Source: Octopus sinensis
Lineage: Eukaryota
NCBI RefSeq assembly: GCF_006345805.1
Contig: NW_021832428.1
Location: 1-64,000, forward strand
DNA: 64,000 nt
Direction of reading: 5' to 3'
Positions 4,400-62,994 of this stretch are shown one piece after another (positions within the stretch are counted from its first letter, which is position 1; each line of letters begins with the position of its first letter). The notes beneath the pieces were generated by a model, which made no database searches, was not told the origin of the DNA, and worked only from the letters and a program-made list of their open reading frames with translations. The translations under genes were made by a program, and so were the position numbers.

Positions 4400-4960
4400 G
4401 TCCAGGATGAGTTTGGCAATGAAAATAGAGTGTTTGTTGTGGAGTACTCCTTTGGTGTCGCCACGGACTGTTCCGCCATTTCTATTGTCTTGTGAGGCAT
4501 CTCCTTCACTTCACAGTAAAAAACCGCCAAGTTGAAGAAAGGCCCTAGTCGGTTGAGGTTGTCGGGCTGCAGAGAGAACAGAGACAATTAATGTGCTTAC
4601 GAATAGGCCTCTAAGATTTGTATCACCTCCTCTACACATGTAAAATGGGAGATTTTCTTGGTGGGGTCGACTATTTCCGTCTTGTAGCAGAGATGGTCGT
4701 CGACTGTCTTGTAGTATTACACCCTAATCTCGGGTGAGTGAGATTGGTGGGGCAGTCCAACACAATACTGCAAACTTCTTCCCTCTCCTTCTCAATCATT
4801 CCATTTATCAGACATCTCGTCAATCGATTTCAGCAGTCGGTGTGACGTAGGTGGCATCCAATCAGTGTTTTGTAGGTAATTGAAACCAGGCATTTCTCCT
4901 CTTGCTCAATTCTCTACAATTCCTTTGTTAATCATCTTGACTGCTTCCGAAACAGAAACC
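4400..4960 (-). pseudogene. 14-3-3 pseudogene
   Basis: Segments EEKCLVSITYK, MIEKEREEVC, EIRV*YYKTVDDHLCYKTE and PDNLNRLGPFFNLAVFYCEV match 14-3-3 helices. There is an in-frame TAA, frameshifts, and a 34-nt GT-AG intron. Confidence 0.75.
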
Positions 4961-5520
4961 ACTGCGACACCGCTTGCCTAAAATTTTTTCTTATATGCTA
5001 TCCGTGGATTAGCACTGCTTGGATGGACGTAAATAATACACAATCTCCCTCTGCTTTAATAAATGTGGCATTCCAGCAAAAATATATGATTTAAACGACA
5101 ATGATGAAAAAAATAGTGTTCTATCTTTTTGTGAATAGAGACGGAGTAGGTTTAAAAGTATTACAAAGTGTTCTATCTCCTATATCGAAAGATTATTTGT
5201 TCAAGGCCCGACGAGAACATACATTCTGGCACTTGTAATGAAAAAGACACTAGAAAGCATAGGAATGGGAATTAATATGCCTAATAAAGAAGTCATTACG
5301 GCAGTTGTTTGCAATGACAAACTAATAATGCGAAAACCCCAGATGAAACAAATTGACAAATTATAAATGACTCTGAGCATGAAAGTAAATGTGGAAATAA
5401 TGAGTTATGGAGTCCCCTAAGATGAGAAAAATTTCCAAAAACTAGGATCAATAATTACTTAATTTCTTATTATTTTTGGTTTTGGATTTAGTTAATAAAG
5501 TTTTTAATTTATTTGTTGTC

Positions 5521-5563
5521 TAACCAATGAGTTATTCGCAATAAAATATTAGCTTTAATTAGA
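5521..5563 (+). promoter_or_regulatory. Conserved proximal upstream element of the LRR family (CCAAT-containing)
   Basis: TAACCAATGAGTTATTC(G/A)CAATAAAATATTAGC(T/C)TTAATTAGA-ATG precedes all four intact copies (5564, 7550, 45348, 62377). Confidence 0.45.
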
Positions 5564-6364
5564 ATGCTTTCACTTGTCCTACTTTTTGTTCACGTAGTGG
5601 TCCAAAGAGACTGTGATTTAACAGAAGAGTTTTTGAAAAATTGCTTATTTGAATTAGAGATTTGGAATACTGTGAATTCAATGGAGAAAATGCTGCAGGA
5701 CATAACACAAGAATTTACATTTATAGCAACGTTGTATTTCCAAATGGAGAAATATTCGCGAATTTAACAAACTTGGAGGATTTGTAATTAACATTTTATT
5801 AACACTAGTTACTGTAATGGAAACTCGCTAAAGAGAATACTAAACAACTCATTTGACGGGTTGAATCACCTAGACCATATGTACATTCAAATATTTTGAA
5901 TCACTAGATCACTGTATCGGTGTAGTGACCTTCGTTACGTGAACGTAGATGCATTTGCACGTCTAGTCGCATTTTCAACTCTGTACAAATCTTATTCTAA
6001 CATTAAAGTTACATGCCACCAAATACCATTTTCCAGAGGCCAAAAATCAGTCGTCCCCTCTACATGAAGTATTTTAACTTACTGACTTTGTAGTATTAAT
6101 GACGGCCAGAAAATGTGCATATTCACAAATGGGTCCCAACCCATAATGTATACTTATATATTCAAATATAAGGATTACAACATTGACATATAAGCTAAAT
6201 ATCAAATTAACTGATAAAAGTGTAGAAATGGATCCATTTACAACTCCAGACGCAACACTAATCACTGAGGAAGCCTACGGTGTGTTATTTTACTCACAAT
6301 AGATTGCAACCTCTGCCGATATCCCGGATCAAGCAATCTTCTATGCTGGAAGGATTGCTTTTGA
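5564..6364 (+). CDS. Secreted variable LRR protein, copy 1 (8 exons, 206 aa)
   Basis: GT-AG introns at 5629-57, 5784-5808, 5881-5907, 5983-6008, 6069-93, 6148-72 and 6280-6302 give an open frame: signal peptide MLSLVLLFVHVVVQ, LRRs FANLTNLEDFYCNGNSLKRILNNSFDGLNHLDHISLYRCSDLRYVNVDAFARL, and Cys cap DCNLCRYP..LLCWKDCF*. Confidence 0.85.
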
Positions 6365-7110
6365 CCTACATTTCGGATGTTACTAATTGACTAACCTAAT
6401 TATTTGCTTTAATATTTCCTTGTTCCTCTTTTGCGACACCACTTGCCAAAAATTCTTTTTTAGATGCTATTAATGGATTAGCACAGCTTAGATGGATGTG
6501 AAATAAAACACAATCTTCCCCTGCTTTAATAAGTGTGGCGTTCCTGTAAAAATATAATTTACACAACAATCATGCAAACAATTTAGTGTTCATATCCCTC
6601 ATGAATAAACTAGTCGGTAATCACGTGACAGAAGAAGAATTTGTCAACTTGGACTTTTAACTACCCACTGAAAATCTCAATGAATAGGAATCATTCCCCG
6701 TTGGCCAATACAAACAGTCTCAGCTTCTGAAGATAATGACGATGACTCAGATAAGCAAACAGGCCAGAAAATATAGAGAAATTACTACGCACAAATGTTC
6801 AAAAAATGCTAAATCTGCCACTTTGTTTGCATTCAAGACCCTGCATTACTCGATCCCGTCGACAGACTGATCTATCCAAAAAATAAAACGATTGCTAAAT
6901 CGAGGCTAAAAACGAGCCAATCCTTATTGACAAATTTTTATTAATATCACTTTGTCGTTATAAGTAAATTTGATGTGCAATATACCGGTCTCCTCTCTAT
7001 AGGAATCGGTTTAGAGTGATTTGATTGTATATAATAAAATTATTTGTCACCCTTCGTCCCCTTTGTCGTATATTTATTTTGAAGGAATAATAATTAAGTA
7101 ATAATGAAAT

Positions 7111-7289
7111 GAGAGATTCCAATTTTTACCGATTCATCGTCGAGGAGAGTGCCAGATGGGACGTTCGGGAATGCTCGAGCAGCAGATTGAAAGTTTGCTT
7201 GCATCCTATTCGATCCCAGTTTCGTTGAGACATTTGATCTTCCGGAAAGTCAAGACCTTGTTTCCTCCAGACTTTGCTAAAATGAACCA
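7111..7289 (-). repeat. Copy of CRE retrotransposon segment 3884-4062 at a duplication junction
   Basis: About 178 nt match with 2 substitutions. It is joined by 2-nt microhomologies to 7112 and to a copy of sequence starting at 5302. Confidence 0.9.
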
Positions 7290-7549
7290 GTTGTTTGCAA
7301 TGACAAACTAATAATGCGAAAACCCCAGATGAAACAAATTGACAAATTATAAATGACTCTGAGCATGAAAGTAAATGTGGAAATAATGAGTTATGGAGTC
7401 CCCTAAGATGAGAAAAATTTCCAAAAACTAGGATCAATAATTACTTAATTTCTTATTATTTTCGGTTTTGGATTTAGTTAATAAAGTTTTTAATTTATTT
7501 GTTGTCTAACCAATGAGTTATTCGCAATAAAATATTAGCTTTAATTAGA

Positions 7550-8338
7550 ATGCTTTCACTTGTCCTACTTTTTGTTCACGTAGTGGTCCAAAGAGACTGT
7601 GATTTAACAGAAGAGTTTTTGAAAAATTTCTTATTTGAATTAGAGATTTGCAAAACTGTGAATTCAATGGAGTAAATGCTGCAGGACATAACACAAGAAT
7701 TTTCATTTTGAGCAACGTTGCACTTCCAAATGGAGAAATATTCTCGAATTTAACGAACTTGGAGAAATTGTAATCAACATTTTATTAATACTAGTTACTG
7801 TGAGGGAGACTCGCTAAAGAGAATACTAAACAACTCATTTGACGGGTTGAAATACCTATACTATATGTACATTCAAATATTTTGAATCACTAGAGAACTG
7901 TATTACTGTAGTGACCTTCGTTACGTGAACGTAGATGCCTTTGCACGTTTAGTCGCATTATCATATCTGTACAAATCTTATTCTAACATTAAAGTTACAT
8001 GCCATCAAATACCATTTTCCAGAAGCCAAAAATCAGTCGTCCCCTCAAAATAGGGTATTTTAACTTACTGACTTTGTAGAATTTATCCAGGCCAGAAAAT
8101 GTGCATATTCACAAATGGGTCCCAACCCATAATGTATACTTATATATTCAAATATAAGGATTACAACATTGACATATAAGCTAAATATCAAATTAACTGA
8201 TAAAAGTGTAGAAATAAATCGAGACGCAACACTAATCAGTGAGGAAGCCTATGGTGTGTTATTTTACTCACAATAGATTGCAACCTCTGCCGATATCCCG
8301 CATCAAGCAATCTTCTATGCCGGAAGGATTGCTTTTGA
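7550..8338 (+). CDS. Secreted variable LRR protein, copy 2 (8 exons, 202 aa)
   Basis: Introns at 7615-43, 7770-94, 7867-93, 7969-94, 8055-79, 8134-58 and 8254-76 (23-29 nt, phases 2,2,2,2,2,2,1). The spliced frame is open for 609 nt to TGA. Confidence 0.85.
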
Positions 8339-8594
8339 CTTACATTTCGGATGTTACTAATTGACTAACCTAATTATTTGCTTTAATATTTCCTTGTTCC
8401 TCTTTTGCGACACCACTTGCCAAAAATTCTTTTTTAGATGCTATTCATGGATTAGCACAGCTTGGATGGATGTGAAATAAAACACAATCTTCCCCTGCTT
8501 TAATAAGTGTGGCGTTCCTGTAAAAATGTAATTTACACAACAATCATGCAAACAATTTAGTGTTCATATCCCTCATGAATAAACTAGTCGTATT

Positions 8595-9400
8595 TGTACG
8601 ACTGTGAGTTCAATGGAGAACATGCTGCGAGACATACAACAACAATTAAAATTACGAGAAACTTTACATTTTCATATGAAGAAATATTCTCGAATTTAAC
8701 AAACTTGGAGACATTGTGATCAACATTTTATTAACACTAGTCAATGTGATGGAGACTCGCCAAAGAGAATACTAAACAACTCATTTTATGGCTTGATTTA
8801 CCTACACTATATGTACATTCAAATATTTTGAATCATTTGATCACTTTAGTAAACTTCGTTACGTGAATGTAGATGCCTTTGAACGTTTAGTCGCATTATC
8901 ATCTCTGTACAAATCTTATTCTAACATTAAAGTTACATACCATCAAATTCCATTTTCCAGTCGCGTTTAATTTAAGAACAATCGTCCCCTCAACCTTCTG
9001 TATTTTAAATTACTGAGTGTATAGTATTATTGATGGCCAGAAAATGTGTATATTCACGAATGGGGCGCTACCCATAATGAATACTTGGATATTCACCTAT
9101 AAGGATTACGAGATTGCCGATCAGTACTTATTCGTTCGCCACCTTGTTATTAACTAACAAAAGTGTGAATATAAAACCAGATATATTTTTCCAAGCAATA
9201 CTAAAATTGGAGCGAGCAGATGATAGATTAGTTTACTCATAATAGATTGCAACCTCTGCTACCATCCCACCCCAATAAACATGATATGCAAAAAGGATCG
9301 TGATCAATCAAAAATTCGAATATCAGTTATTAACTAACCTAGTTATTTGTTCTAATATTTCCTTGTTCTACTTCTTATGTGTTGTTACATGGAGTAGTCA
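8595..9400 (+). pseudogene. Variable LRR family copy 3, 5'-truncated pseudogene
   Basis: It starts inside exon 2. The intron-3 acceptor is mutated, exon 4 has a deletion, exon 5 has a stop, and the intron-6 donor is GT->GA. Confidence 0.8.
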
Positions 9401-9434
9401 CAGTCAAAGATACATGATCTCTTACAAATATATG

Positions 9435-10811
9435 TCACAGGCGCTGTGAGCGACCGAGCGCAGCGAGCGACTTTGACTACAAATAAAAATATATGATGAT
9501 AAATAATATAGCCCAACCTGTACAGTAATCGTATATATCTTTTGGTGTGGATGCCACATTCGAGTACAATCAGTGTCCTCCACCACCACACAGCTTACGT
9601 TGACACTAATTGTGGGGAGGACACTCGAATAATTAAGGAGTATCAGATTGTACTCATTACTTGAAACCCTCGACAACACAATAGTCTCCGAATTAGTACT
9701 GCACTCCACATCTACTCCCCCACTCACACTCAATCGGTCTATTACAGTTGTCTCCTTTCTCACATCTAACACAGGAAAAATCACAGCATTCGCCCATTTC
9801 AATGTGACATTCTTCTCTTTAATCGTATCCACTTGGATTGTATACACTCCCACTCTGTTGTTGGTGTAGTTCACATCCACATCAAATACATCATTCAACA
9901 CTTTATATGTGCCGACCGGTGTAATCTCTCCACTATCCGTCAAAGAATATATTCCGTTGATGGTTGTATGTGAATACGTTGGCATTCCGTATTTTGCAAT
10001 CTCCTCGTCCGTGGGTTGGATTTTGATCAAATGTTTTCCGCTTATCGGGACTTTTTTGAGGATGACGTCGTAGAACTGAATGGGAGTGTTGCGGGAGGAG
10101 TTGAATGTGATGGCAATGTCCATGAATGACCAGTAGCGTATGTCGAGTTGGTCAAAGGCAATGACTCGCAGGTTAATGGGGAAGAGGGGAGTAAGGGAGG
10201 AGTGGCATACAAGAGTGGGGGATGATTTGTTATTTGTGAGGGAGAACTGACTATCCCCCACCACTTCATACCATGTCTGTCCATTCACCCCCGAGTCTTT
10301 ATCCACAGCTTTCGGGAAGTGGATAATTAACCCAGTTGATAATCCTCCCAGTGTTATGTTCCGTTTATTTCTTGGGAATATTGGGGGGTTGTCATTTATG
10401 TCCAGGACCTATCACTTTAGTTCACCAGTTCTTACTGTTATATATATTTCGACTGTGTATGATTTGTAATCTTTTAGAAGTGTGATTTCTAAGAATATAA
10501 CACCATATTTAAATCCAGAACGAGGTCCGTCGTAGTCTATTCGATCAAGCACCTAATTTAATTAAGTTATATTCATTTAACCATTATTTCTCCAAATATA
10601 TTAGCCGAGAAATACACATTTGAATACTTAATATCTGTGTAGTATCCACATTGCACACCAGTCCCTTGGCAGAAGTTGTATACGACAGTGCCAACAGGAA
10701 TCTCTTCTTTTATTGTCTTGTATAGTTTTATTCTCTCAGAGTGAATGAAAGTGGCGAGTAAAGTGAGTAGTAGAGTATTCTATATAAGTTAGTGTTTACA
10801 CTGCCAACCAT
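9435..10811 (-). CDS. Protocadherin-like gene copy B, 3'-truncated (about four EC repeats, no TM)
   Basis: It has an ATG-only first exon and 29/29/27-nt introns, signal peptide MNTLLLTLLATFIHS, and EEIPVGT, RIDYD, VLDINDNPPIF and AVDKDSG. Homology to copy A stops inside intron 4 at about 9478. Confidence 0.75.
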
Positions 10812-10893
10812 TAAGGAGGATTAGCATCGCCGGAATATTTGTTTATATACTGTTTAATAACCCGGGAATCGTAGTTTGAGATTTATTTTGACC

Positions 10894-16682: not shown

Positions 16683-17762
16683 TCACGAAAATAGGCACAT
16701 TGCACGATTGCGTCTAAAAATTCGTCGAATGCGTTGTCCAAATGGCTCACTTGCCTTCTCCATAAAAATTCTACAAATTAAATCTGAATATTTAATACCT
16801 GCAAAGTATTCACCCATATAGTGGCGTGCGGTTCCTCTTTGTCTCTTATTGCGCCATTTTGCGTTCCTCCACATTCTATATTTTTGTATATAATTTTTGC
16901 TACACGAACCTCTCAACAGTCTGGGTATGTGCACGGTCTCCGGGTCTACAAAATTTCGTCTGCAAATTATAAATGAATTATAATAAACTTGTGATTTACT
17001 GTAAGATGCACATATCCAAGAGCAGTTAGATCTGGGGTTGAATAACCTATTAACAAGAATAAAGTAATTACAATTACCCTTCCATTTGTCAGAGTGTATC
17101 ACTGAACCCGGTGCGATATTTCGCTGTATCGCTGCGGTTAACGTTCTTTTGGAGCGATCTGGTACCATCTCCAGGAAACAGTCTTTTGTTCCACGACAGA
17201 TTCCCCCAAACACCCATTGTTGAGGGAGAATCCGTCCCGCATTATTTTTTCTTTTCGAAAACATACTTTCGTCAACTTCTACGACATTTTCAATTCCACC
17301 TATGCAATCTAATAATGTAATATAACAATCAGTTTGTTCGGACAATTTGCTAAATATGCAGCACATACTTCCCGCAGCGAGTGAGACCAATTACATATCG
17401 TTTGGCCACTCCATTCCAGTTGACGCCTACACCATAAAATGGTGTGTCTGTCGAAGCTCCACATATAAATAAAACGAATACAAGATTCTAAGGACACTGT
17501 CGTGCCTTCGAGCCACGTACCTAAAAATAAAGTACTCTCTTATTACACCGTTTCGGACAGAACTTGAAATTCGACACTCGCTTTTATCGCACACCCAAGT
17601 TGTACCATCTCGCTCTAAGATCATCGGATGTCTTTTGGCGCATTTCTTTTCGGTTGGAATGATTCCAACCTCCTGAAGGAAGGCTACGGACTCCATCTCA
17701 GAGCGAGGGAGTTCGAAGTCCTTCAATTTTGCGTATTTTCTCATCCCAACGTGACCGTCCAT
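16683..17762 (-). mobile_element. Merlin (IS1595/ISXO2-like) transposase gene with micro-introns, frameshifted
   Basis: Motifs VVEVDESMFSKRK...QQWVFGGI, IHSDKWKGY, HLTVNH, ERMWR and AEFLWRR are joined by 27-34-nt GT-AG introns. There are two 1-nt deletions. TIRs were not identified. Confidence 0.8.
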
Positions 17763-27759: not shown

Positions 27760-30700
27760 CCATAATTATTATTATTATTATTTAAGCCAAAAAACAGAAT
27801 CACCGTCTTAACCATTAACTAACGTGTTCAGGTGATTCCGACACTTCTCAACAGTCGAGCCATCTTTTCACGATGTTCAGACCGTGACCCCACACACTTT
27901 CTGTATGTACGGTGAAATGCTTGTGGTCCATCTCCACGATCCCTCCCACTTGCCTCTACAAGAGACTCCAGTGTTCGATGGACAATTTTCCTGTCGGTAT
28001 GGTCCTTCAGTAGGTTTATGGATTTTTCTTGGATTTTCTCGATTTTTACTTGGTTCGTTGCCGCCAGGTTACAGCCCCAAGCAGCACATGCATAGCCTAT
28101 TGTTGGCTCGATATACTGCTTGTAAAGGGTCTCTACCCCTGGCGGACAAGTTCTCCCACAGTTCCAAAGAAAGGCTTTCACAAAATTGATTTTCTTAATA
28201 CAAGTTGACACGATCGATTCAACATGAGGTGAAAAACAGAGGAAAGTATCAAACGTTACACCCAATATCTTCTGTGTTTTCTTTTGTGTTATTGGGACTC
28301 CATTCAGCGTGACTTCAATAGTTTTCGTCCCCATCTTCCTGTTTTTCGTGAATAGGGTGACTGCTGACTTTTCGGAACATGCATGTAGTCTGTTTTCATA
28401 TAGCCATCCATATAAGTCGTCCAGTATTCTTTGTAGTCTTTCCTTCGCGTATTCGACATTTACATCCCTAGATGCGACAACTATGTCATCGGCATAGGAG
28501 AGTAGTATGTCATTATTATCCATAGGAACCGGGAGATCATTCAGAAACAAGTTGAAGAGGGTCGGGGATAAAAGAGAACCCTGGGGTACACCATTGGGCA
28601 ATAAGCGTGATCTTGAACTCTCGTTCCCGACGCACACTTTCCCACGACGTCCGCTCAAAAAATTCGCTATCCATAGCTTCATAGGTGTAGAAATATTTGT
28701 ACCAAATATCTTTTGAATTAGGATCTTCCTTGGGACGGAGTCAAACGCTTTTTGAATGTCGATAGTGCATACAATTGATTTCTCCTGCAATTTCTTCTTT
28801 TTGTGTCCTTCATTTATAAAATCTGTTAGTGTGGTGAGGAAGGAGGTCGTTGACAATCCTTCCTTGAATCCATGTTGAAATGTGGATTGTGGGAGGAAAG
28901 GGCGAATATGTTTTAGGACCAGTTTTTCCAAGATTCTTGACAGCACACATATAAGGGATATTGGTCTATAGGAGCCGGGGTCGTTTTTCGGTCTTCCAGG
29001 TTTTAATATTGGCCGGATTTTTGATAGTTTCCATAAGTTCGGTATAGAGTTCGTGAATAATGATGTGTTATAGATCGTGGTTAAAGCATTTATTGAAACT
29101 GGGCCCAAGTGTTTTAGTAGAATAAGTGGAATTCCATCCGGTCCACATGAGTTTGTTTTCTTCTGATTCGAGATTGTTTCAGACACCTCTTCAGGAAGAA
29201 AATAAGTCGTCGGGGGCCTTTTGGATGGCTTTGATTTTAATCTTGGCTGTGAGTTCATTTTTTTATAAGGAATATGACTAATCTTGACACAGTGTTTCAT
29301 AAAATTGTTTAGATTGAGCTGATATGTTTCTGTTTTACGCTCGTCAGGATTCTTTAAGCGTCTCAACATCGTCCACATGGCCGAAATAGAGGCTTGTTTA
29401 TTCATGGCTCTAGAGATTCAGCTGAGCTTCTTCCTTTGGACTTGGTTGGTATTATTCGTAATAAGCATGTTTAGAGCCCTGATTCGATCGATGATTACTT
29501 TGGGTCGATACTTTCTTTTCTTGAGGCTGGTTCTTTCTCTGATTAGTTTTTTCGTTCTTGAGTCATATTTTGAGCTCCCACTTCTTATACATGCTCTTCT
29601 GATAATCAAATTTCTTGCATCTATGATAGTTTTGTTGAAGCTTTCCACTGCCCTGTCCAAGGAAGAAAAATTCTTAGGGTGAAAGTTCTGGAGTCTTGAA
29701 TCGACGTAATTTGCGAAAGCATTCCAATCTGCGTTTTCGTAATCATAGAAATAATTTGGTTTCAGTATGAGATGTGGAGAACAGTTCATTCTCATTATCA
29801 TTGAGTGGTGGTCACTTCGGAGATCATAGCGGACCGACCACTTGATGATAGGGGAAAGCCGAGGTGAGCAGATTGATAGATCTGGCGATGTCCTCGTGTC
29901 CTTAGAGTTGTAGGGTGTTCGAGTGTTCTTTTTCGGGTTGTTAAGGATTATTAACTTCTGCAATTGCGATATCAAAAGGTTTCCTCTGGCATCGGCAGTC
30001 TGATATCTGAACCAAGCGGGATGCTTCGCGTTCAGATCTCCGCATAAGAGTAAGTTATCCAATTTATCAAGGCTTGATAGGTCAAAACGATAGCCCTTCT
30101 TGCATGAACCTGGGGGAGGTACGTAGACATTGGCGATTTCAAGTCTTCCGTAGGAGGTCATAAGTGAGATTCCAATTATTTCGGTGTTGGAGTCCTTCTT
30201 TAGGCTTGTATACGGTAAGGGATTCTCGAAATATTTTATTCCTCTCCATGCTCCGACTCGCGGTCACATCGTAGTGCATCGTATCCAGCAAAAAGAGGAG
30301 TAGGGATCCGTTTCGAAAGTTTCGTCTCTTGGAGAAGACAGATATCTATTCGGTTCTCCTCCAAAAAACTGGCAAGTTCCGCCGTCTTTCCTCGAATCCC
30401 GTCAATATTCAGGCATTGTATTGTTAGCTTTGGACCGGGATTCTGTTCCACGTCACCTGAGGTCAACAGCAACAATCGATAGTAAGTGCCAACGTTGAGA
30501 AGATGCCGTCCAGGGGGAAGTCCTCTGGTTGGCGGGGAGCAAATGGTTCTTTTTAGATACCGTTTAGGACTGTATCCGGCGCCACCAGAAAAGGTGAACC
30601 ACATGACGCGCGCTAAAAACATAATTCAGTCAAAGATGATGTTTTTTCTATCGGATCTGTCAAAAAAATATGTTTACCAGTACGAATCATTGTATTTATT

Positions 30701-40130: not shown

Positions 40131-40864
40131 AATAAATAAAAGAAATCTTAGTTCAAGGTTAATGTACAGGCTGCCAATAGATATCGCATGGCCCATGTGA
40201 ATTAGAATACTATTATTCAAGTAAAAATTAATTCCACCTATTAAAACACGTAATCAATGTAAGCCTATCTTATCATTTAAATAAAAAAGGTTATTATTTA
40301 TGGAAAAAATATGACAAATAATTAATGAATAGACTGAGGCAGTTTAGAAGATCTGACAGTTTAAATAACGATTTGTCCAGACAATAAAAACAGATACACT
40401 GAATGATTTAGGCCTGAAAAATATTAACAGTCAATATTCCCAATCGATTAATATTGTATGGTATCACTTTCCCATATCAAAAAATAAGGAATAAAAAATT
40501 GTTTTTAAAAATCATTGCCTTTGTTTAGAAAAAAGCATCTCGAGAGTGCTTAATCTAGTCTTTAGAATTAATTTGTAATGAATTATTGAAATGATAAGGA
40601 ATGGTGTGGTTTTGTAATTTTAGACGCATTATATTACAGTAAAATAACAATGCAGTGAGTGCAATTAAGACACATTCAAAATGGTTGAAAAATATTCCCT
40701 AATTTATTGGAGTGCCCTGATTTTAACATTTGGAGTGTTTTTGTGCATTTGGGCAATCGAAAATATTATGTAAAACAATCCATGATTTGTTTACTGCTCA
40801 AATATGATTACGGCGTTATTAAACAGTATATAAACAAATATTCCGGTGATGCTAATCCTTCTTA

Positions 40865-43342
40865 ATGGTTGGCAGTGTAAACACTAACTTGTATAGAATA
40901 TACTACTACTCACTTTACTCGCCACTTTCATTCACTCTGAAACCATACAACTATACAAGACAATAAAAGAAGAGATTCCTGTTGGCACTGTCATATACAA
41001 CTTCTGCCAAGGGACTGGTGTGCAGTGTGGAGACTACACAGATATTATGTATTTAAATATGTATTTCTCAGCTAATCTATCAGGAGAAATAATGGTTAAA
41101 TAAATATAACTTAATTAAATTAGGTGGTGTATCGAATAGATTACGAAAAAATTGTTTTGAGCAGTCAAGAGGGAATAATTAACTTGGAACTAATTCTTAC
41201 AAAAAATGATGAAATAGATATAGTAAAAATATATATAACAGTAAGAATTGGTGAACTAAAGTGACAGGTCTTGGACATAAATGACAACCCCCCAATATTC
41301 CCAAGTAATAAACGGAACATAACACTGGGAGGATTATCAACTGGGTTAATTATCCACTTCCCGAAAGCTGTGGATAAAGACTCGGGGGTGAATGCACAGA
41401 CATGGTATGAAGTGGTGGGGGATAGTCAGTTCTCCCTCACAAATAACAAATCATCCCCCACTCTTGTATGCCACTCCTCCCTCACTCCCCTCTCCCCCAT
41501 TAACCTGCGAGTCATTGCCTTTGACCAACTCGACATACACTACTGGTCATTCATGGACATTGCCATCACATTCAACTCCTCCCACAACACTCCCATTCAG
41601 TTCTACGACGTCATCCTCAAAAAAGTCCCGGGAAACAGAAATAAAGTGCTCACAATCCAACCCACGGACGGGGAGATCGCAGAATATGGAAGACCGACGT
41701 ACCCAACACGCGTCTATGGGAAATTTTCGGTGTCATATGACGGAGAGATTACACAGTTCGGCACATATACAGTGTTGAATGATGTATTTGATGTGGATGT
41801 GAAATACACCAACAGCAACAGAGTGGGAGTGTATACAATCCAAGTGGAGACGATTGAAGAGAAGAAGGTCACATTGAAATGGGCGAATGCTGGGAGTTCG
41901 TCTGTTTTAGATGTGACAAAGAAGACAACTTTAATAGACCGATTGAGTGTGAGTGGGGGAGTAGATGTGGAGTGCAGTACTAATTCGGAGACTGTTGTGT
42001 TGTCGAGGGTTTCAAGTAATGAGTACAATCTGATACTCCTTAATTATTCGAGTGTCCTCCCCACAATTAGTGTCAACGTAAGTTGTGTGGTGGTGGAGGA
42101 CACTGATTGTTCTCGAATGTTGCATCCACGTCAAAAGATATATACAATTACTGTACAGGTTGGGATATACTATTTATCATCATATATTTTTATTTGTATT
42201 CTTACTTAAATTTATAATAGATTATGCCTAAAGATTACAATCCCACACCACAATTATTGAAAATATATGAGAATATGCCCATTCATACCGATGTTTATAT
42301 TGGAATTACTGAAGATTGGAGAATAACAGACAATCCAAATTTTAGTGATCAATCATTTAATAAAAGTTTCATATCTTCAAAGAGGTTATTTGACCAAGAA
42401 ATCGAAAAGGTTGTTGATGCTGAGCTTCGCTTACCAAATAATACTTATATCAATAAAACGATTGAAATTATGGACGTGAATGACAATTCTCCAGTGTTTA
42501 CAAACAAGACATGTTCTGTCATTACATTGAGAAATACTTCTCCCGGACAATATTTAACAAATGTATTTGCTGAGGATGCTGATCTTGGAATGAACGGAAA
42601 AATCAATTATAAAGTCATTTCAGTAACGAATATGAATGAAGACATTGGAAGCTGTGATTCAAAAACAAACTTCGCGAATAAATTTAAAATTGATCCGAAT
42701 TCGGGACAGTTATACGTAAATCAGATCATTGAAAATGCGGGATATCTTCTTCTTAATATACAAGCTACTGACTCGGGGTCACAAAAATTATTTGCCAATA
42801 TTCGCTGTCTTGTTCACGCGGTCGATTTGACGTCTATTTTTGATTATTCATTCAACGGGGGTAGTGCAGTGCAGCATCAGAATATTAAGTTGTCACAAAT
42901 TCAACTTGGACAAACTTTTTTGAAGAATACAGCTACTTTGTGGAGTTATTTCTTCGACGATTTTATATTTACAATTCCCGATGATTCCTTGCGGTATTTC
43001 AACGTTGATCCTTATTCCGGAAATGTCAGTTACGTTGGAGAAATTCAACCGTCTTTGACAAACAACTATACTTTGACGATAACTGCTTTCTCACGAAAGC
43101 ATGTTTACCTGAAATATAATTTCAGTGTAAATTTGTTATCGCAAAGTTCTTCGACTGTTCATCAATCTGTGGACAAAAAATATATTGCTATCATCGTCCT
43201 GCTTGTTGTACTTCTTACTGGTTTGGGCATTTTTGTTGGTTTTCGTTACCGCAAAAATATTCTGTCATTTATGAAGAAAAATGAGGAATATGCAACAAAC
43301 AACGAAATCTACGAATGTCAAGATGTTTACAACAACCTTTAA
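40865..43342 (+). CDS. Protocadherin-like single-pass membrane protein, copy A (5 exons, 776 aa)
   Basis: Introns lie at 40868-96, 41095-123, 41241-67 and 42159-220. It has a signal peptide, cadherin motifs (VLDINDNPPIF, AVDKDSG, IMDVNDNSPVF, AEDADLGMNG, ATDSG), TM IAIIVLLVVLLTGLGIFVGF and a short tail ending VYNNL*. Confidence 0.9.
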
Positions 43343-44220: not shown

Positions 44221-44550
44221 AGTTTGTGACAATATCCCAAATCTTTTATGGTTCCTATTCTTTGAGATTTTCTAAATTCTCCTTCTGTCACGTCATTACC
44301 GACTAGTTTATTCATGAGGGATATGAACACTAAATTGTTTGCATGATTGTCGTTTAAATTACATTTTTACAGGAATGCCACACTTATTAAGCAGGGGAAG
44401 ATTGTGTTTTATTTCACATCCATCCAAGCTGTGCTAATCCATGAATAGCATCTAAAAAAGAATTTTTGGCAAGTGGTGTCGCAAAAGAGGAACAAGGAAA
44501 TATTAAAGCAAATAATTAGGTTAGTCAATTAGTAACATCCGAAATGTAGG

Positions 44551-45348
44551 TCAAAAGCAATCCTTCCAGCATAGAAGATTGCTTGATCCGGGATATCGGC
44601 AGAGGTTGCAATCTATTGTGAGTAAAATAACACACCATAGGCTTCCTCACTGATTAGTGTTGCGTCTCGAGCTCGATTTAGATATATTTCTCCACTTTTA
44701 TTAGTTAATTTGATATTTAGATCATCTGTCACTGGCGTAATCCTTATATTTTAATATCTAAGTATACATTATGGGTTGGGACCCATTTGTGAATATGCAC
44801 ATTTTCTGGCCGTCAATAATACTACAAAGTCAGTAAGTTAAAATACTTCATGTAGACGGGACGACTGATTTTTGGCCTCTGGAAAATGGTATCTAGTGGC
44901 ATGTAACTTTAATGTTAGAATAAGATTTGTACAGAGTTGACAATGCGACTAAACGTGCAAAGGCATCTACGTTCACGTAACGAAGGTCACTACAGTCATA
45001 CAGATCTCTAATGATTCAAAATATTTGAATGTACATTTGGTATAGGTGAATCAACCCGTCAAATGAGTTGTTTAGTATTCTCTTTAGCGAGTCTCCATTA
45101 CAGTAACTAGTGTTAATAAAATGTTGATTACAATGTCTTCAAGTTTGTTAAATTCGAGAATATTTCTCCATTTGGAAATTTAACGTTTTTATTAATTTCA
45201 ATTGTTGTTGTACGTCCCGCAGCATTTGCTCCATTAAATTCACAGTTTTGCAAAACTCTGATTCAAATAAGCAATTTTTCAAAAACTGTTGTAAGTCACA
45301 GTCACTTTGGACCACTAAGTCAACAAAAAGTAGGACAAGTGAAAGCAT
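44551..45348 (-). CDS. Secreted variable LRR protein, copy 4 (8 exons, intact)
   Basis: It has the same seven introns. The spliced frame is MLSLVLLFVDLVVQSDCDLQQVLQNC...LKTFYCNGD...LIHLYQIDLYDC...LSTLYMPLD...CWKDCF*. Confidence 0.85.
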
Positions 45349-46399
45349 TCTAATTAAAGCTAATATTTTATTGTGAATAACTCATTGGTTAGACATCAAA
45401 TAAATTAAAAACTTTATTAACTAAACCCAAAACCGAAAATGATAAGAAATTAACTAATTATTGATCCTACTTTTTAAAAATTTTTCTCCTCTTGAGGGAA
45501 CTCCATCTAGGAATTTGGATAAGTTACAAAAATTTTTTTGAGCCGGAATACACTTCAAATCCGAGAACTCCGTTACTCGTGATTATGAATAAAACACTGA
45601 TGTTCTGTTCACAATTACATCGAGTTAATCTGACATCATTGATTTCAATCGGAAAATTGCCACTAAACGTTGAGTGTGTCGAGTGAGCCATATTTATCGT
45701 TTGTGACTACATCACAAACTTTATAGCTTTAAATATTGTTGGTTGCGATACAAAGATATCTAGACGACAAAGCGTTGTCTCATTAGTAGTAATGAGTTAT
45801 TACTTACTAAGAAGATGGCTTGCACTGTATGGTCTTGGTTAATAATAATCAATTTATAGTTATTTAAAAGTTAATAGAGTCATTTATGTACGGAAATTCT
45901 CAGACTGTTCTCGAGAATGGCAATAGAAATTCTTTGCTAAAACGAAACGGAAAGGGCTTTGAATACGATTTGTGCAAAGGGTAGTCTGCGCGACACAAAG
46001 GAACTAAATTGATTTTGGTTTTTTATGTGTTCTCGGCAGTGCTGATAATAATATGTAACGTGGAATCGACCAAAAAGGCACGAGTTTCTCGCCGACAGTC
46101 GGGAGAGTTTCTACTAAATTTCAAAGTCAAAAAAGATGTAGAGAAACTTTCAAAATGAATTAAAAAAGAAAACCTTTTTCAGAAGAAGGCCATTCTTTCA
46201 AACATAAGAAATTCGGCCAGTGGCAATAATTTTAAAGAATGCTCCCACTTGATTTAAAATTGAGGAACTCGAGGACTTTTTGAAAAGCAATGTTAAATAA
46301 AAAATGACTTTCGAAAAAAGTTTGTTTCATAAGGAGCAGTGTCATTTTCAGGATTGTCGTCTATTTTCGCATATTCTAGACGGGAATAGAGTAAAATAA

Positions 46400-48819: not shown

Positions 48820-49999
48820 ATGACATATTTTATTGGTTTATTACGATTTATTCAATGTATATTATTTTCATCTCTAAATGTAATGAAAATAACTCAATAA
48901 GGCTATGATTGCATATCCCATTCGCAATAAAGCATACGTTAAATGACGTAGAATTACTGGAACAATTCCTGGACCCTGACTCTGTCAATATGATAAGAGT
49001 ACTACTATCGAACACAAAGCTCAAGGTGCGGGTCGGCACGGCGTTTTCCGTGAATTCACGTGCAACGTCGGTACCCCTCAGGGAGACGCCCTCTCGCCGT
49101 TGCTATTCGTGATCTATCTGGAGACGGCACTACGAGACCTTCGAAAATTCTATGCTGGCAATATCGTTGAAATTGTATATGCAGATGACGTCGACTTCGT
49201 GTCAGACGACAAATCGGCCTTACTTCGACTCCTTGAAGTGGCACCTGCTGAGCTGAACAGATGGTTCCTTAAAATGAACGTTGGAAAAACCGACATCGTT
49301 GAAATCATGAGGATGGAGAGCAGCTCAAGTGAAGCCTGGCGCAAAACGAACAAACTCGGTTCTCTACTTGGGGACGGCCATGATATTGTCAGAAGAAAGG
49401 CTCTCGCTTGGGCCACGATGAACAAGATAAAGAAAGAGTGGATCGGCAAACGACGACTCTGTACGTCACTTCGTCTGAGGATGTATGAAGCCTTTGTCAA
49501 ACCAATCCTGACATATAATTCGGCGACCTGGGGAATGTCTAGTACTGAACAACGTGGACTTGATTCTTTTCACCGCAGGCAACTTAGATCCCTACTGGGA
49601 TTGAACTGGCCTATAAGAATCAACCAGGAATCGCTATACAATAGATGCAGAACTGGCCCTCTGAGTGTGGAAATCGTCAATATGCGGTGGAGGTTATTTG
49701 GCCATATTCTACGAATGGACATGCTTGCCCCAGCTAACATAGCAATGGAGGGCTACTTCCTGAAAGAGGGATCGAGCTTCCGTGGACGTCCACGTGTTAC
49801 GCTGCCGGAAACACTTGACGGAGACCTGAAATGTGTGAAGAAAAGGCTAAGGAGTGGTGAGGATCTGGACGAGCTGAGGAAACTCGCTCACGACAGAGGA
49901 GGTTGGAGGAGGCTGGTTCAAAGGATTGTTTTTAATGCTGCACGAGTAAAATTATAACTAATATGATTCTACGTATGTTGCAAATAATAATAATAATAA
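48820..49999 (+). mobile_element. 5'-truncated RTE-clade non-LTR retrotransposon
   Basis: It reads VP(QG)DALSPLLF (frameshift), YADDVDF, KPILTYNSATW and RPRVTL, with a (TAA)n tail at 49984-99. Confidence 0.85.
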
Positions 50000-50102: not shown

Positions 50103-50747
50103 TTAATTGTCGGGCTTAATTTTGAACATTTTCTTGAACAAATGGAGGACGTTGTGTGACTTGGCACGACAAAACAAATGTCTGGCAAGGGTGTGTGAGG
50201 GTTGTGAGGCCTTGCGGACATCATAGAGGGTAGGACTGCCGGTCTTAACTTGGAAGTATTGCATAAGGAGTGCCTGAAAAAAGTGTTTGACAGAGCAGTC
50301 ATTAATGACGGACAGGTGGTAGACATGGGAAAAGAATTGTGAGTGAGTGGTGACCTCGTAGACTGTACTGTCGGAGTGATTGTCGACGAAGGCAGTCAGG
50401 GGCATGGACTTGTTCCTCAAAAAGAGGATTTGGTTGAAAATGTCCTTCACTTTTTGGAAGGAGTACTTGTCCTTGTATTTATAGACGAGGATGATTATGT
50501 CCGCCTCGATTATGGCGATTTTGAGCATAGCGGGACTGCAGAAGGTGCCACACGTGTCGACGATTTGGAAGGTGGCCGTGTGATTGAGTTGAGCTTCGTA
50601 GACGTCGCCGATGGTGGGTTCGTAGGTGATGAGTTTCTTTCCCCACAAATAATTGGAGATGAGTGTAGTCTTGCCTGTGTTCTTGTACCCCATTACATAT
50701 ATTTTGAACTTGATTATGCCATTCAGAGAAATGCTCATGTCGTCCAC
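50103..50747 (-). CDS. Ras-family small GTPase (DIRAS/RASD-like)
   Basis: It has P-loop GYKNTGKT, YEPTIGDVY and IVDTCG.F..PAML, in a 214-aa single exon. Confidence 0.8.
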   Translation of the reverse strand: MDDMSISLNGIIKFKIYVMGYKNTGKTTLISNYLWGKKLITYEPTIGDVYEAQLNHTATFQIVDTCGTFCSPAMLKIAIIEADIIILVYKYKDKYSFQKVKDIFNQILFLRNKSMPLTAFVDNHSDSTVYEVTTHSQFFSHVYHLSVINDCSVKHFFQALLMQYFQVKTGSPTLYDVRKASQPSHTLARHLFCRAKSHNVLHLFKKMFKIKPDN

Positions 50748-50817
50748 TGCCTCGGCATTGGCTTATAATCAATCGCCCTCGTCAATGTCCTTATTTTAGT
50801 AATAATATTAATTGAAC

Positions 50818-58600: not shown

Positions 58601-59501
58601 TGGGGGTTGTGTGTTTGGTGGGAGGACGACCAAGCGGAGTCTCCTCTGGGAAACCAATTCGGTGGTGGTGGTGAGGGAATACGAGTCATTTGGTTGTTTG
58701 ACCGCAAACAGGTCTTGTCCAAGAATGGCCAAATGTCCTCTGTCTATAGCACACGTGAGGTCGATTGGGGCAGGGAGTGCATCCAGTCTCACCTCCACGA
58801 CCAATCTCTCTCGGAACATCCTTTCGGGCCTCTCGGAAATGGACAGGACTGAATGTGGACTGGAATAAGGAGGACCCTCACTTTGTCCAGATGTATGACT
58901 TGGAGGCGTACTGTGTGTTGGTGGAGGTGATTTGGACATATCCAGTGGTCATGTTATGAGTGCCCTCATTGCTGTTCTTCCTGAAGGTTATCTTTTCGTA
59001 AAACTCCATCAGTTCTCGTTTGATTCTGCGAATAATTATAAACAAATCAGTCTCGATCGATTAAGCATGTTGCCTTAAGCACTCACTCGCTTAGACTCTC
59101 GTCTTGGACAAACAGCCACGGAATGGAGATTCTGTCCCCCTTCGCAGTCTCCACCTGCAATGACATTAGGGAGGCAACCAAGTAGTCGTCGAGTCCATCC
59201 ATCTCCATAAACTGCACTCGATCTCCCTCCTTGAGTTGACTCTACCAATAAGGCACGACTTCACTTTGTAGTCAACAAGGAGGCAGAATGATGTGTTCTT
59301 GGGACGCAGGTAGTCCATCCGCCTCAGCAGTTGTGTCACCTTCCCTTCCTCTCTTGATGACATCACCTCCTGCAGTGCTGTCAAATGGTGTGTCAGGCTG
59401 TGTCGTATTCTATCCGCCGAGTAACACCCCCTCTCGTACAACTGGGAACTGGTTGTCAATAGTTGTTTCAGGCAGGTCGAAATGTGGTTGACTGTCTCCA
59501 T
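52618..59501 (-). CDS. Spectraplakin-like protein (Shot/MACF1/dystonin family), many micro-introns
   Basis: It has a plakin/SH3 region (LRPKN..LLVDYK|SQLKEGD), a large 451-aa exon with a plectin-repeat-like AIDRGHL, spectrin-like helical repeats, EF-hand-like GRITRERFVTGL and GAR domain FVRVGGGWQSLSQFIRAVDPCR. Confidence 0.8.
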
Positions 59502-60760: not shown

Positions 60761-61573
60761 CCTACTAAACAGAGATCACTTATTGGGCATACCACACAAC
60801 CAAACAACAATTCCTTTATTTTTATGTCATTTCATTATTACTTAATTATTATTCCTTCAAAATAAATATACGACAAAGGGGACGAAGGGTGACAAATAAT
60901 TTTATTATATACAATCAAATCACTCTAAACCGATTCCTATAGAGAGGAGACCGGTATATTGCACATCAAATTTACTTATAACGACAAAGTGATATTAATA
61001 AAAATTTGTCAATAAGGATTGGCTCGTTTTTAGCCTCGATTTAGCAATCGTTTTATTTTTTGGATAGATCAGTCTGTCGACGGGATCGAGTAATGCAGGG
61101 TCTTGAATGCAAACAAAGTGGTAGATTTAGCATTTTTTGAACATTTGTGCGTAGTAATTTCTCTATATTTTCTGGCCTGTTTGCTTATCTGAGTCATCGT
61201 CATTATCTTCAGAAGCTGAGACTGTTTGTATTGGCCAACGGGGAATGATTCCTATTCATTGAGATTTTCAGTGGGTAGTTAAAAGTCCAAGTTGACAAAT
61301 TCTTCTTCTGTCACGTCATTATCGACTAGTTTATTCATGAGGGATATGAACACTAAATTGTTTGCATGATTGTTGTGTAAATTACATTTTTACAGGAATG
61401 CCAGACTTATTAAGCAGGGGAAGATTGTGTTTTATTTCACATCTATCTAAGCTGTGCTAATCCATTAATAGCATCTAAAAAAGAATTTTTGGCAAGTGGT
61501 GTCGCAAAAGAGGAACAAGGAAATATTAAAGCAAATAATTAGGTTAGTCAATTAGTAACATCCGAAATGTAGG

Positions 61574-62377
61574 TCAAAAGCAATCCTTCCAGCATAGAAG
61601 ATTGCTTGATGCGGGATATCGGCAGAGGTTGCAATCTATTGTGAGTAAACTAACACACCATAGGCTTCCTCAGTGATTATTAGTGTTGCGTCTGTTGTTG
61701 CAAATGGATCCATTTCTACACTTTTATCAGTTAATTTGATATCTAGCTGATTTGTCACTGTTGTAATCCTTATATTTGAATATATAAGTATACATTATGG
61801 GTTGGGACCCATTTGTGAATATGCACATTTTCTGGCCGTCAATAATACTACAAAGTCAGTAAGTTAAAATACCTCATGTAGAGGGGAAGACTGATTTTTG
61901 GCCTCAGGAAAATGGTATTTAATGGCATGTCACTTTAATGTTAGAATAAGATTTGTACAGGCTTAATGATCCGACTAGACTTGCAAAGGCATCTACGTTC
62001 ACGTAACGAAGGTCACTACAGGATTGCAGTTCTCTAATGATTCAAAATATTTGAATGTACATATGGCGTAGGTGAATCAACCCGTCAAATGAGTTGTTTA
62101 GTATTCTCTTTAGCGAGTCTCCACGACAGTGACTAGTGTTAATAAAATGTTGATTACAATTGCTCCAAGTACGTTAAATTCGAGAATATTTCTCCATTTG
62201 GAAATAGAACGTTGCTAGAAATTGCAATTATTGTGTTATGTTCTGCAGCATTTGCTCCATTGAATTCACAGTTTTGCAAAACTCTGATTCAAATAAGAAA
62301 TTTTTCAAAAACTGTTGTGTTAAATCACAGTCTCTTTGGACCACTAAGTCAACCAAAAGTAGGACAAGTGAAAGCAT
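61574..62377 (-). CDS. Secreted variable LRR protein, copy 5 (8 exons, intact)
   Basis: It has the same seven introns. The frame reads MLSLVLLLVDLVVQRDC...LEQFHCRGD...LIHLRHIELQSC...SLSLDMPLN...CWKDCF*. Confidence 0.85.
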
Positions 62378-62994
62378 TCTAATTAAGGCTAATATTTTAT
62401 TGCGAATAACTCATTGGTTAGACAACAAATAAATTAAAAACTTTATTAACTAAATCCAAAACCGAAAATAATAAGAAATTAAGTAATTATTGATCCTAGT
62501 TTTTGGAAATTTTTCTCATCTTGAGGGGACTCCATAACTCATTATTTCCACATTTACTTTCATGCTCAGAGTCATTTATAACTTGTCAATTTGTTTCATC
62601 TGGGGTTTTCGCATTATTAGTTTGTCATTGCAAACAACTGCCGTAATGACTTCTTTATTAGGCATATTAATTCCCATTCCTATGCTCCAGAACGATGCTT
62701 TCTAGTGTCTTTTTCATTACAAATGCCAGAATGTATGTTCTTGTCGGGCCTTGAATAAATAATCTTTCGATATAGGAGATTGAACACTTTGTAATACTTT
62801 TAAACCTACTCCGTCCCTATTCACAAAAAGATAGAACACTATTTTTTTCATTACTGTCGTTTAAATCATATATTTTTACTGGAATGCCACATTTATTAAA
62901 GCAGAGAGAGATTGTGTATTATTTACGTCCATCCATGCAGTGCTAATCCACGGATAGCATATAAGAAAAAATTTTAGGCAAGCGGTGTCGCAGT

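Follow-up and report, generated by a model that had tools for sequence, protein, structure and literature searches.

A family of at least 48 LRR genes, divided by very short introns and diversified at a periodic set of codons, is present in DNA of apparently dicyemid origin within an octopus reference assembly. In our judgement it is probably a large germline dicyemid family of secreted LRR proteins, diversified as a binding repertoire. Dicyemids are parasites of the octopus kidney with around 30 cells and around 5,000 genes, and to our knowledge there is no molecular account of their attachment, feeding and persistence in cephalopod kidneys. If the reading is right, the dicyemid phylum would have in this family its first candidate for a recognition or host-interface repertoire, and one of its largest lineage-specific expansions.

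Gene copies and their flanks

The window, i.e. the whole 64-kb stretch of DNA that was analysed, harbors four copies with open frames (c1 to c4) and one decayed copy (c5). The gene c1 (5564..6364, + strand) encodes 206 amino acids in 8 exons (5564-5628, 5658-5783, 5809-5880, 5908-5982, 6009-6068, 6094-6147, 6173-6279 and 6303-6364) separated by 7 tiny introns. In tandem to it lies c2 (7550..8338, + strand; 202 amino acids), with exons at 7550-7614, 7644-7769, 7795-7866, 7894-7968, 7995-8054, 8080-8133, 8159-8253 and 8277-8338; its duplication unit, 7288-8590, matches 5302-6616 at 94.9%. On the minus strand are c3 (44551..45348; 205 amino acids; exons 45348-45287, 45257-45132, 45106-45035, 45007-44933, 44906-44847, 44821-44768, 44742-44636 and 44612-44551) and c4 (61574..62377; 207 amino acids; exons 62377-62313, 62283-62158, 62132-62061, 62033-61959, 61932-61873, 61847-61794, 61768-61659 and 61635-61574), the latter belonging to an inverted segmental duplication with c1 (4714-7112 against 63250-60827, 95% match). 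The predicted introns of c1 to c4 measure 29, 25, 27, 26, 25, 25 and 23 nt, all of them GT..AG, while exon sizes span 54–126 nt and exons 2–6 are symmetric (multiples of 3). A preliminary description of this DNA had placed four copies with seven shared tiny introns at 5564+, 7550+, 45348- and 62377-, and both the positions and the open frames hold; the strand peptides quoted there, as well as the segments SLKRILNNSFDGL and SDLRYVNVDAFA given as invariant, proved correct on re-checking.

The fifth copy, c5 (8592..9368, + strand), has 76–77% identity to c1–c4 and is a probable pseudogene: exon 1 is missing, the intron 3 acceptor reads TTG, the intron 6 donor reads GA, and frameshifts and stops are present. 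The same type of lineage was found again on other contigs.

Between c1 and c2, recounting reproduced the low background divergence previously described, with a single difference in ca. 262 nt of homologous upstream flank, an identical exon 1, 3 differences over the 180 intron nt and 4 silent codon differences. The exons together differ at 48 of 609 nt, corresponding to 32 amino-acid differences, 9 of which involve changes of two or more nucleotides, plus a 4-codon indel.

Upstream of the ATG of c1 lies a promoter-proximal block of ca. 55 nt (5509..5563, + strand) containing CCAAT and AATAAAATAT motifs, with equivalents at 7495-7549 (+, c2), 45349-45403 (-, c3) and 62378-62432 (-, c4). This block is nearly invariant across all subfamilies, although the inter-subfamily dS is ca. 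0.5. The 3′ flank of c1 (6365..6616, + strand) is kept within its subfamily, with a TTAACTAACCTAATTATT block kept family-wide. It contains a repeat of ca. 165 nt at 6432-6596, other members of which lie at 4963-5125, 8406-8570, 44320-44483, 61343-61506 and 62830-62992.

Source of the DNA

The contig is inferred to be dicyemid DNA contaminating the octopus reference assembly. Its traits are of dicyemid type, with a GC content of ca. 36%, LINEs and tiny introns, which also occur in a neighbouring cadherin gene; the genome-reduced animal of the preliminary claim would be a dicyemid. An octopus origin of the LRR family was rejected on the placement of every copy on unplaced contigs of at most 892 kb, and also on the 27- and 29-nt introns of the cadherin gene. 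Among other animals, introns shorter than 30 nt are reported from myxozoans only. A myxozoan source was likewise rejected, as haemocyanin arrays carried by chromosome-scale scaffolds show the assembly to be molluscan and the GC content agrees with Dicyema japonicum (36.7%), not with Henneguya (29%). A tRNA scan of the 64-kb window returned none. The widely used octopus assembly apparently carries substantial parasite DNA.

Protein features and LRR identity

The proteins of c1–c4 (202–207 amino acids) share a hydrophobic N-terminal leader and approximately six LRRs, with no TM segment. After the N-terminal hydrophobic core no later segment exceeds a KD19 value of 1.3, and the family proteins have neither a stalk nor a hydrophobic tail at the C-terminus. 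They are probably small, soluble, secreted proteins. Nine Cys residues are conserved, among them C17 and C27 near the N-terminus and four at the C-terminus (CxxC...C...C), as are three N-glycosylation sequons (NLT, NNS and NGS). The Pfam LRRNT and LRRCT models gave no hit.

Searched against solved structures, the family profile matches LRRTM, LGR4/5, LRRC4, VLR and repebody chains with E values of 1e-16 to 1e-7, including the VLR chains 2o6s and 2r9u at ca. 1e-9, and the LxxLxLxxNxL register aligns in the matches to solved LRR ectodomains. Pfam gave LRR_8 on c1 with an E value of 1.2e-5, and LRR_8 and LRR_5 at ca. 1e-5, all under the gathering cut-offs; for BspA-like LRR_5 (PF13306) the best score, 25.4 bits, stayed under the cut-off of 27.7 bits, so that membership of that family is not supported. 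Taken together, the matches place the predicted proteins in the LRR superfamily, within the extracellular “typical” 24-residue class.

The family across the assembly

At least 48 (about 50) distinct loci of the family were identified on ca. 35 unplaced contigs, and 31 of these gave intact models, in which the reading frame is preserved and none of the 14 splice dinucleotides is lost (434 in total). Exon length changes among paralogs are multiples of 3. The remaining 17 of the 48 loci are decayed or partial, and some of these “pseudogenes”, where they carry indels of 1–2 nt, may be long-read errors. The pattern is not a product of chance, because the profile matches solved LRR ectodomains and 31 of 48 loci retain both frame and splice sites. 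No intronless retrocopy was found in the assembly, the introns being retained in all 52 matches. The assembly is redundant, with identical copies on up to four contigs, and some of the loci counted as paralogs may in fact be allelic, or may be orthologues contributed by other dicyemid species in the same infection. Three subfamilies are present together on single contigs.

Single-sequence and 10-sequence-profile queries of a collection of 5.8 billion proteins recovered no homologue, and the family is not mentioned in the dicyemid literature searched. Genes with such tiny introns evade ORF-based and standard eukaryotic annotation.

Diversifying selection on the repeat strands

Pairwise whole-gene dN/dS among the four window copies ranges from 1.5 to 3.0; within subfamily A, dN is higher than dS for 42 of the 55 pairs. 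At invariant codons dS is 0.111 and at hypervariable codons 0.125, where dN reaches 0.75; the equality of dS at the two classes indicates that there is no local mutation excess. Local hypermutation and deaminase signatures were rejected on this ground and because all base pairs vary. DGR-type mutagenesis was rejected as well: the selected codons vary at each of their three positions and in all six base pairs, not at template adenines alone, and dS is not raised at hypervariable codons.

Among 27 intact paralogs the single-ratio model M0 gave an omega of 1.09. A custom FUBAR-like grid, with branch lengths fixed, identified 34 codons with P(beta>alpha) of at least 0.9 and 56 purified codons, raising the log-likelihood from -7143 (M0) to -6685. 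The 2dlnL of the grid model was 125, whereas 20 null simulations reached no more than 11.9 and yielded 5 sites at the most. Recombination inflates site-model tests of this kind; a repeat with four partitions on separate trees, which handles part of that effect, retained 33 of the 34 selected sites. In a check for very recent selection, pooled pN/pS of the six closest paralog pairs is 0.94, based on too few changes to carry weight.

The selected codons are concentrated at x in the LxxLxLxx strands: of the 34, 22 coincide with one of the 30 such positions (Fisher 8.5e-15). The registers of LRR5 and LRR6 in this count were assigned from the periodicity of hydrophobic residues, the variable sites being known at the time; with the HMM-anchored LRR2–4 alone, the count is 11 of 15 (2.6e-7). 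Three further selected sites fall in an indel-prone C-terminal loop (residues 173–176), and Tyr is enriched 4.6-fold at selected sites. By motif register, the selected residues would correspond to the predicted concave binding face. The preliminary description had proposed a diversified recognition or host-interaction repertoire. Two of the outcomes that would have refuted it were looked for and did not occur: omega is above 1 at 34 codons in the larger sample, and the selected codons cluster on the strands. This supports a diversified repertoire, one not described before, with a possible role in host interaction.

Recombination and the conserved introns

Intron divergence among paralogs is ca. 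0.3 times the synonymous rate (the cadherin paralog pair taken as a control for this conservation has only 56 intron nt, not enough to judge by), so that the introns are no neutral yardstick. Introns and flanks had served as a neutral reference in the earlier account of c1 and c2, a use that has to be given up: the whole-gene contrast is a dN/dS of 1.5–3, not a ca. 20-fold one. The tiny introns bisect nearly every hypervariable strand. Their conservation below the synonymous rate bears on how ultra-short introns are recognised, or on a use of introns in recombination.

The PHI test for recombination is significant in subfamily A (p 0.001) and in subfamily B (<0.0005). The nearest paralog switches from exon to exon, making the paralogs exon-scale mosaics; exon 4 of c2, for example, shows 2 differences from a copy on another contig but 10 from c1, and pseudogenes are the nearest neighbours of some exons. 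Site incompatibility is in excess across introns, the site pairs of this comparison not being independent. The mosaicism and the PHI signal imply that the differences between c1 and c2 were largely imported by gene conversion from other paralogs rather than arising as new point mutations, which corrects the preliminary reasoning on this pair.

A predicted binding repertoire and its alternatives

In the architecture proposed here, a signal peptide would be followed by a 2-Cys N-cap, approximately six LRRs and a C-terminal cluster of 4 Cys, yielding a soluble protein. Each paralog would expose to solvent its own combination of residues, on the concave face formed by the beta-strands as well as on the C-terminal loop, and with exposed residues differing in this way the family would act as a repertoire of binding proteins of differing specificities. 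The diversity would have been created and maintained in the germline by tandem and segmental duplication, by exon-scale gene conversion or recombination between paralogs, generating mosaics, and by diversifying selection on ca. 30–35 codons, while the framework, cysteines, glycosylation sequons, promoter and tiny introns would have been kept by purification. The likeliest targets would be molecules encountered in the octopus renal sac, whether epithelial or humoral factors of the host, microbes or other dicyemids. Recombinant paralogs offer concrete reagents for work on the dicyemid host interface.

The same molecules might instead serve the parasite's own defence or self/non-self recognition, directed at microbes or other dicyemid clones and species and not at the host, a reading that we regard as unlikely but credible. 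Soluble LRR immune factors exist in other invertebrates, and a paratope-like composition with concave-face variation would suit any recognition task. Dicyemid infections are, in one published account, frequently multi-species (PMC12953835). On the other hand, no signalling or anchoring domain is present to couple binding to a response, and the present data do not discriminate between targets. We also know of no described dicyemid immune system. A more elaborate proposal, which we hold to be improbable, is programmed and possibly somatic or stage-specific gene conversion, in which the ultra-conserved introns are the joints, paralogs and decayed copies the donors, and half-strand modules are shuffled among at least 48 loci, with one or few genes expressed from the shared promoter, in the manner of VLR assembly, of pseudo-V conversion in the chicken or of the VSG mosaics of trypanosomes. 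The exon-scale mosaics with pseudogenes among the nearest neighbours, the excess incompatibility across introns, an intron conservation far exceeding generic splice needs, the decayed or partial state of 17 of 48 loci and the single promoter block common to the subfamilies are all in keeping with it. However, the genes are complete and individually intact, the site pairs behind the incompatibility excess are not independent, and in a single assembly germline conversion over evolutionary time explains the observations equally well. If true, an animal of ca. 30 cells would possess combinatorial recognition of a VLR/VSG-like kind.

Two further readings were weighed. That the copies are allelic or haplotypic variants from a mixed population of parasites, or else sequencing errors of long reads joined into one contig, draws on the redundancy of the assembly, with its identical copies on up to four contigs, and on the status of the parasite DNA as a contaminant, probably of low coverage. 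It is nevertheless very improbable, as one contig carries four intact copies and a pseudogene in both orientations with distinct flanks, the three subfamilies occur together on single contigs, and the copies differ by substitutions spaced periodically along the codons, unlike the indels typical of long-read error. We give hardly any credence to a family in decay or under relaxed constraint, in which non-functional copies would drift neutrally and so give an omega close to 1. The M0 omega of 1.09 and the broken state of ca. one third of the loci are what it would predict, but rate heterogeneity is strong (-7143 against -6685), 56 codons are strongly purified, cysteines, sequons and the 434 splice dinucleotides are all retained in the 31 loci, the variation follows a period instead of being spread evenly, and the promoter is conserved.

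Comparison with known systems

The best sequence matches of the dicyemid family are animal extracellular LRR proteins of the LRRTM, LGR4/5, LRRC4/NGL, LRFN/SALM and Nogo-receptor type (E 1e-16 to 1e-8), with which it has the 24-residue LxxLxLxxNxLxxIxxxxFxxL repeat in common. Those receptors, however, are conserved, single- or few-copy and membrane-bound, with canonical LRRNT and LRRCT caps, whereas the dicyemid family has no TM segment, caps that may be non-canonical, at least 48 copies and no orthology. Schistosome MEGs resemble it in being parasite-specific, secreted (by prediction in the dicyemid case), multi-copy and hard to annotate, with short symmetric exons and variation thought to act at the host interface. 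They differ in having exons of 6–36 nt, alternative splicing and non-LRR products; the dicyemid exons (54–126 nt) lie above the micro-exon limit of 36 nt, and their variation is between paralogs.

Listeria internalins and other pathogen-secreted LRR proteins are multigene families whose concave face engages host surface molecules. The likeness, a multigene LRR family encoded by a pathogen or parasite, is a functional analogy only, since internalins are bacterial, with 22-residue repeats and cell-wall anchors or an IR domain, are not homologous and are without comparable site-wise hypervariability between paralogs.

The family had been called VLR-like at the outset, a comparison that stands for the location of the variation but not for its generation, as the germline genes are complete. 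Agnathan VLRA/B/C and the dicyemid proteins both have small LRR-only ectodomains of ca. 170–240 amino acids with Cys caps (putative ones in the dicyemid case), hypervariability at the x residues of LxxLxLxx (for the dicyemid, as read from the motif register), Tyr-rich variable sites and a variable, indel-prone C-terminal loop, which in VLRs is the LRRCT insert. VLR diversity, however, is somatic, an incomplete germline gene being filled from flanking cassettes by deaminase-linked copy choice, whereas the dicyemid genes are complete in the germline at 31 loci, with the diversity between paralogs, and c5 beside c2 is a decayed full-length paralog, not an LRR cassette. VLRs also possess a stalk and GPI anchor, both absent from the dicyemid proteins, which belong to a parasite of ca. 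30 cells with no known lymphocytes.

The LRRs of plant NLRs and receptor-like proteins form clustered families with dN above dS on the solvent-exposed strand residues (xxLxLxx) and a purified framework. The plant proteins are large host defence receptors that combine numerous LRRs with NB-ARC, TM or kinase modules, unlike the dicyemid ones, which are small (ca. 190 amino acids), soluble by prediction and parasite-encoded, with a tiny intron inside nearly every strand. Both, though, are mosaic through gene conversion or unequal crossing-over, and in evolutionary mode the plant families are the closest counterpart of the dicyemid one.

Gene copies and predicted protein

A unit of ~1.3 kb occurs four times in the window at 91–95% identity (reading of 5200–8700 and alignment of the copies), housing the LRR genes c1 (5564–6364, +), c2 (7550–8338, +), c3 (44551–45348, −) and c4 (61574–62377, −). 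Gene models come from one splice model, derived by hand and projected onto every copy. Each gene is predicted to comprise eight exons of 65 (62 in c3), 126, 72, 75, 60, 54, 95–110 and 62 nt, exons 2–6 all being multiples of 3, separated by seven GT..AG introns of 29, 25, 27, 26, 25, 25 and 23 nt, all of phase 2. The predicted reading frames of 206, 202, 205 and 207 amino acids, respectively, are open only with all seven introns removed, because the single intron with a length divisible by 3 carries an in-frame stop. When the copies were re-aligned and the splice models re-derived, the difference counts and peptide strings of the preliminary description proved correct. A fifth copy (c5, 8592–9368, +), with 76% identity to the four-copy unit by alignment, has no exon 1 and contains frameshifts, and two of its splice sites are gone; it is therefore a pseudogene. 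Its promoter and exon 1 are replaced by a ~165-nt repeat (80–84% identity; 4963–5125, 6432–6596, 8406–8570, 44320–44483, 61343–61506 and 62830–62992), which is also found 3' of every LRR copy, with c1 and c4 having it on their 5' side as well.

The protein has a hydrophobic leader at its N-terminus and no further hydrophobic segment in its sequence, nine conserved Cys residues, of which two are N-terminal, three lie internally and the last four form a C-terminal CxxC...C...C cluster, and three conserved sequons (NLT, NNS and NGS), features that fit a putative soluble secretory glycoprotein. A profile of ten family members aligns in register to canonical extracellular LRR proteins, among them LRRTM (1e-16), LGR4/5, LRRC4, VLRs and repebodies, while Pfam LRR_8 and LRR_5 give E ~1e-5, slightly below their cut-offs. 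No homologue was matched among 5.8 billion predicted proteins, and the literature searched contained no link between dicyemids and LRR proteins; for Dicyema japonicum, one published supplementary table contains just 34 LRR_4 genes. The family appears to be undescribed so far.

Probable dicyemid origin and family size

The window makes up the first 64 kb of unplaced contig C8899 (86.8 kb), with ~36% GC and LINE-type elements, and a cadherin gene on this contig also has 27- and 29-nt introns. Among animals, introns below 30 nt are reported only in myxobolid myxozoans and the dicyemid D. japonicum (PMC13644364), an octopus-kidney dweller of 36.7% GC with 49% repeats rich in LINEs (PMC6736024). 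The tiny introns, GC content and LINEs, and the match to D. japonicum in these traits, argue strongly for dicyemid DNA contaminating the host octopus assembly.

The chromosome-scale Octopus sinensis assembly GCA_006345805.1 (2,719,151,902 bases, 13,516 sequences; PMC10700109) was searched whole with DNA queries, three divergent members and one spliced query. Family members were found on ~35 contigs of 20–892 kb and on none of the chromosome-scale scaffolds, which carry molluscan haemocyanin gene arrays; parasite-type contigs of up to 892 kb, ~35 besides the window's own, lie among the unplaced scaffolds. Distinct loci number 48 of the 55 fetched, the other 7 being byte-identical duplicates on overlapping contigs; the end of another unplaced contig (C9004) has the same sequence as the beginning of C8899, and four contigs carry identical copies of c4. 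A constrained splice search gave intact seven-intron models in 31 of the 48. Some loci broken by 1–2-nt indels alone could reflect long-read errors, and near-identical pairs may in some cases be allelic or stem from a second dicyemid species. At least three subfamilies occur together on single contigs and are therefore paralogs; more distant members are also present in the assembly.

Cadherin-domain paralogs at 9422–10880 (−) and 40797–43342 (+) are ~90% identical, with introns of 29, 27 and one of 62 nt. Their divergence is patchy (e.g. 41130–41235 and 41630–41770), with omega ~0.9 over the long exon, and they may represent a second fast-evolving surface family adjoining the LRR genes. The window also holds a non-LTR retrotransposon encoding endonuclease and reverse-transcriptase domains (27828–30263, −), two further RT-like ORF fragments (255–2119, −; 48980–49957, +) and a DDE-transposase-like ORF (16683–17390, −). 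Between 48000 and 60000 GC rises to 44–49% vs ~35% elsewhere in the window, and this block contains a Ras-family GTPase ORF (50103–50762, −) and long ORFs without Pfam hits (57584–58948, −; 53283–54059, −); it may be dicyemid as well or may represent a chimeric join.

Selection and position of the variable sites

The 11 intact subfamily-A genes have a nucleotide diversity of 0.122 for exons against 0.028 for introns, and whole-gene dN/dS among c1–c4 is 1.5–3.0. Of the 55 subfamily-A pairs, 42 have dN above dS; Fisher tests on single pairs are marginal (p 0.006–0.16). A local mutation-rate effect is ruled out as the source of the dN excess, since dS at invariant-residue codons (0.111) is the same as at the 29 codons of greatest variability (0.125), where dN is 0.75. 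Substitutions at selected codons involve every codon position and every base pair, and so bear no adenine-only or deaminase-type signature.

Across 27 intact genes M0 omega was 1.09, and a custom FUBAR-like grid model (branch lengths fixed, weights empirical-Bayes) gave 34 codons with P(beta>alpha) of at least 0.9 and 56 purified codons. Relative to a null model in which beta may not exceed alpha, 2dlnL was 125; 20 parametric simulations under that null reached a maximum of 11.9, with at most 5 false sites. Four partitions, each with its own tree, retained 33 of the 34 selected sites. Site-level dN/dS thus exceeds 1 at 34 codons in this larger sample.

The x positions of the LxxLxLxx motif line the concave sheet in established LRR structures. 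The register was taken from alignment to solved LRR proteins for LRR1–4 and from hydrophobic periodicity for the two final repeats, which are irregular. The 30 x positions (2, 3, 5, 7, 8) take in 22 of the 34 selected sites (Fisher p 8.5e-15), and within the HMM-anchored LRR2–4 only, 11 of 15 x positions are selected vs 3 of 53 others (p 2.6e-7). Most selected sites cluster on the x positions of the strands, as first suggested, and the motif register, read with known LRR structures, would place these residues on the concave face. The other selected sites are found immediately ahead of strands, within the N-cap (21, 23, 25) or in a C-terminal loop prone to indels (173–176). Tyr is enriched 4.6-fold at selected sites; Ser, Gln and charged residues are also enriched.

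Recombination and conserved introns

Support in the subfamily-A tree is poor, and PHI detects recombination in subfamilies A (p = 0.001; 0.01 without selected codons) and B (p <0.0005; 0.0005 on third positions). The nearest paralog switches exon by exon: exon 1 of c1 and c2 is identical, c2 exon 4 has 2 differences from a copy on another contig vs 10 from c1, and c1 exon 2 is closest to yet another copy. c1 and c2 have near-identical flanks but 8% exon divergence, which, with this switching, points to patchy gene conversion, and the pair is best read as a probable recent tandem duplicate with overwritten patches. Alternatively, the framework is homogenised while selection maintains the patch differences. 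On either the conversion or the homogenisation reading, the c1–c2 difference does not reflect ~60-fold accelerated point substitution.

Introns evolve at ~0.3 times the synonymous rate (0.032 vs 0.113 within subfamilies; 0.163 vs 0.531 between), as exemplified by the far more conserved c1 introns at 5983–6008 and 6069–6093 (+). Nineteen genes from two subfamilies share an identical intron 4, which contains CTAAC. D. japonicum introns genome-wide carry little signal, namely GTa, AG and a few weak A residues (PMC13644364), and generic dicyemid splice signals do not account for the conservation. Introns may need to bear all splice information since exon ends can vary freely, or may serve as homology islands for conversion. 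Introns 2–5 cut the hypervariable strand itself (LxxL|xLxx), and informative sites lying a few nt apart on either side of an intron show incompatibility more frequently than sites inside one exon, although such pairs are not independent. The cadherin pair is the sole control, too small to discriminate. Directly upstream of the ATG, a 55-nt block (5509–5563 and equivalents at every copy) with CCAAT and AATAAAATAT is near-invariant in all subfamilies despite dS of ~0.5 between them, which suggests shared regulation of the copies.

Relation to known LRR systems

The family observation is real, and the interpretation given in the preliminary description survives, having passed both refutation tests run, of site dN/dS and of surface clustering. 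Its "VLR-like" label stands with regard to the variable surface; on the present evidence, the family is not a somatic system of the VLR type. VLRs are an analogue in the surface used for diversity, whereas the family described here is germline and paralog-based, and plant R-gene LRRs and similar systems diversify the same surface.
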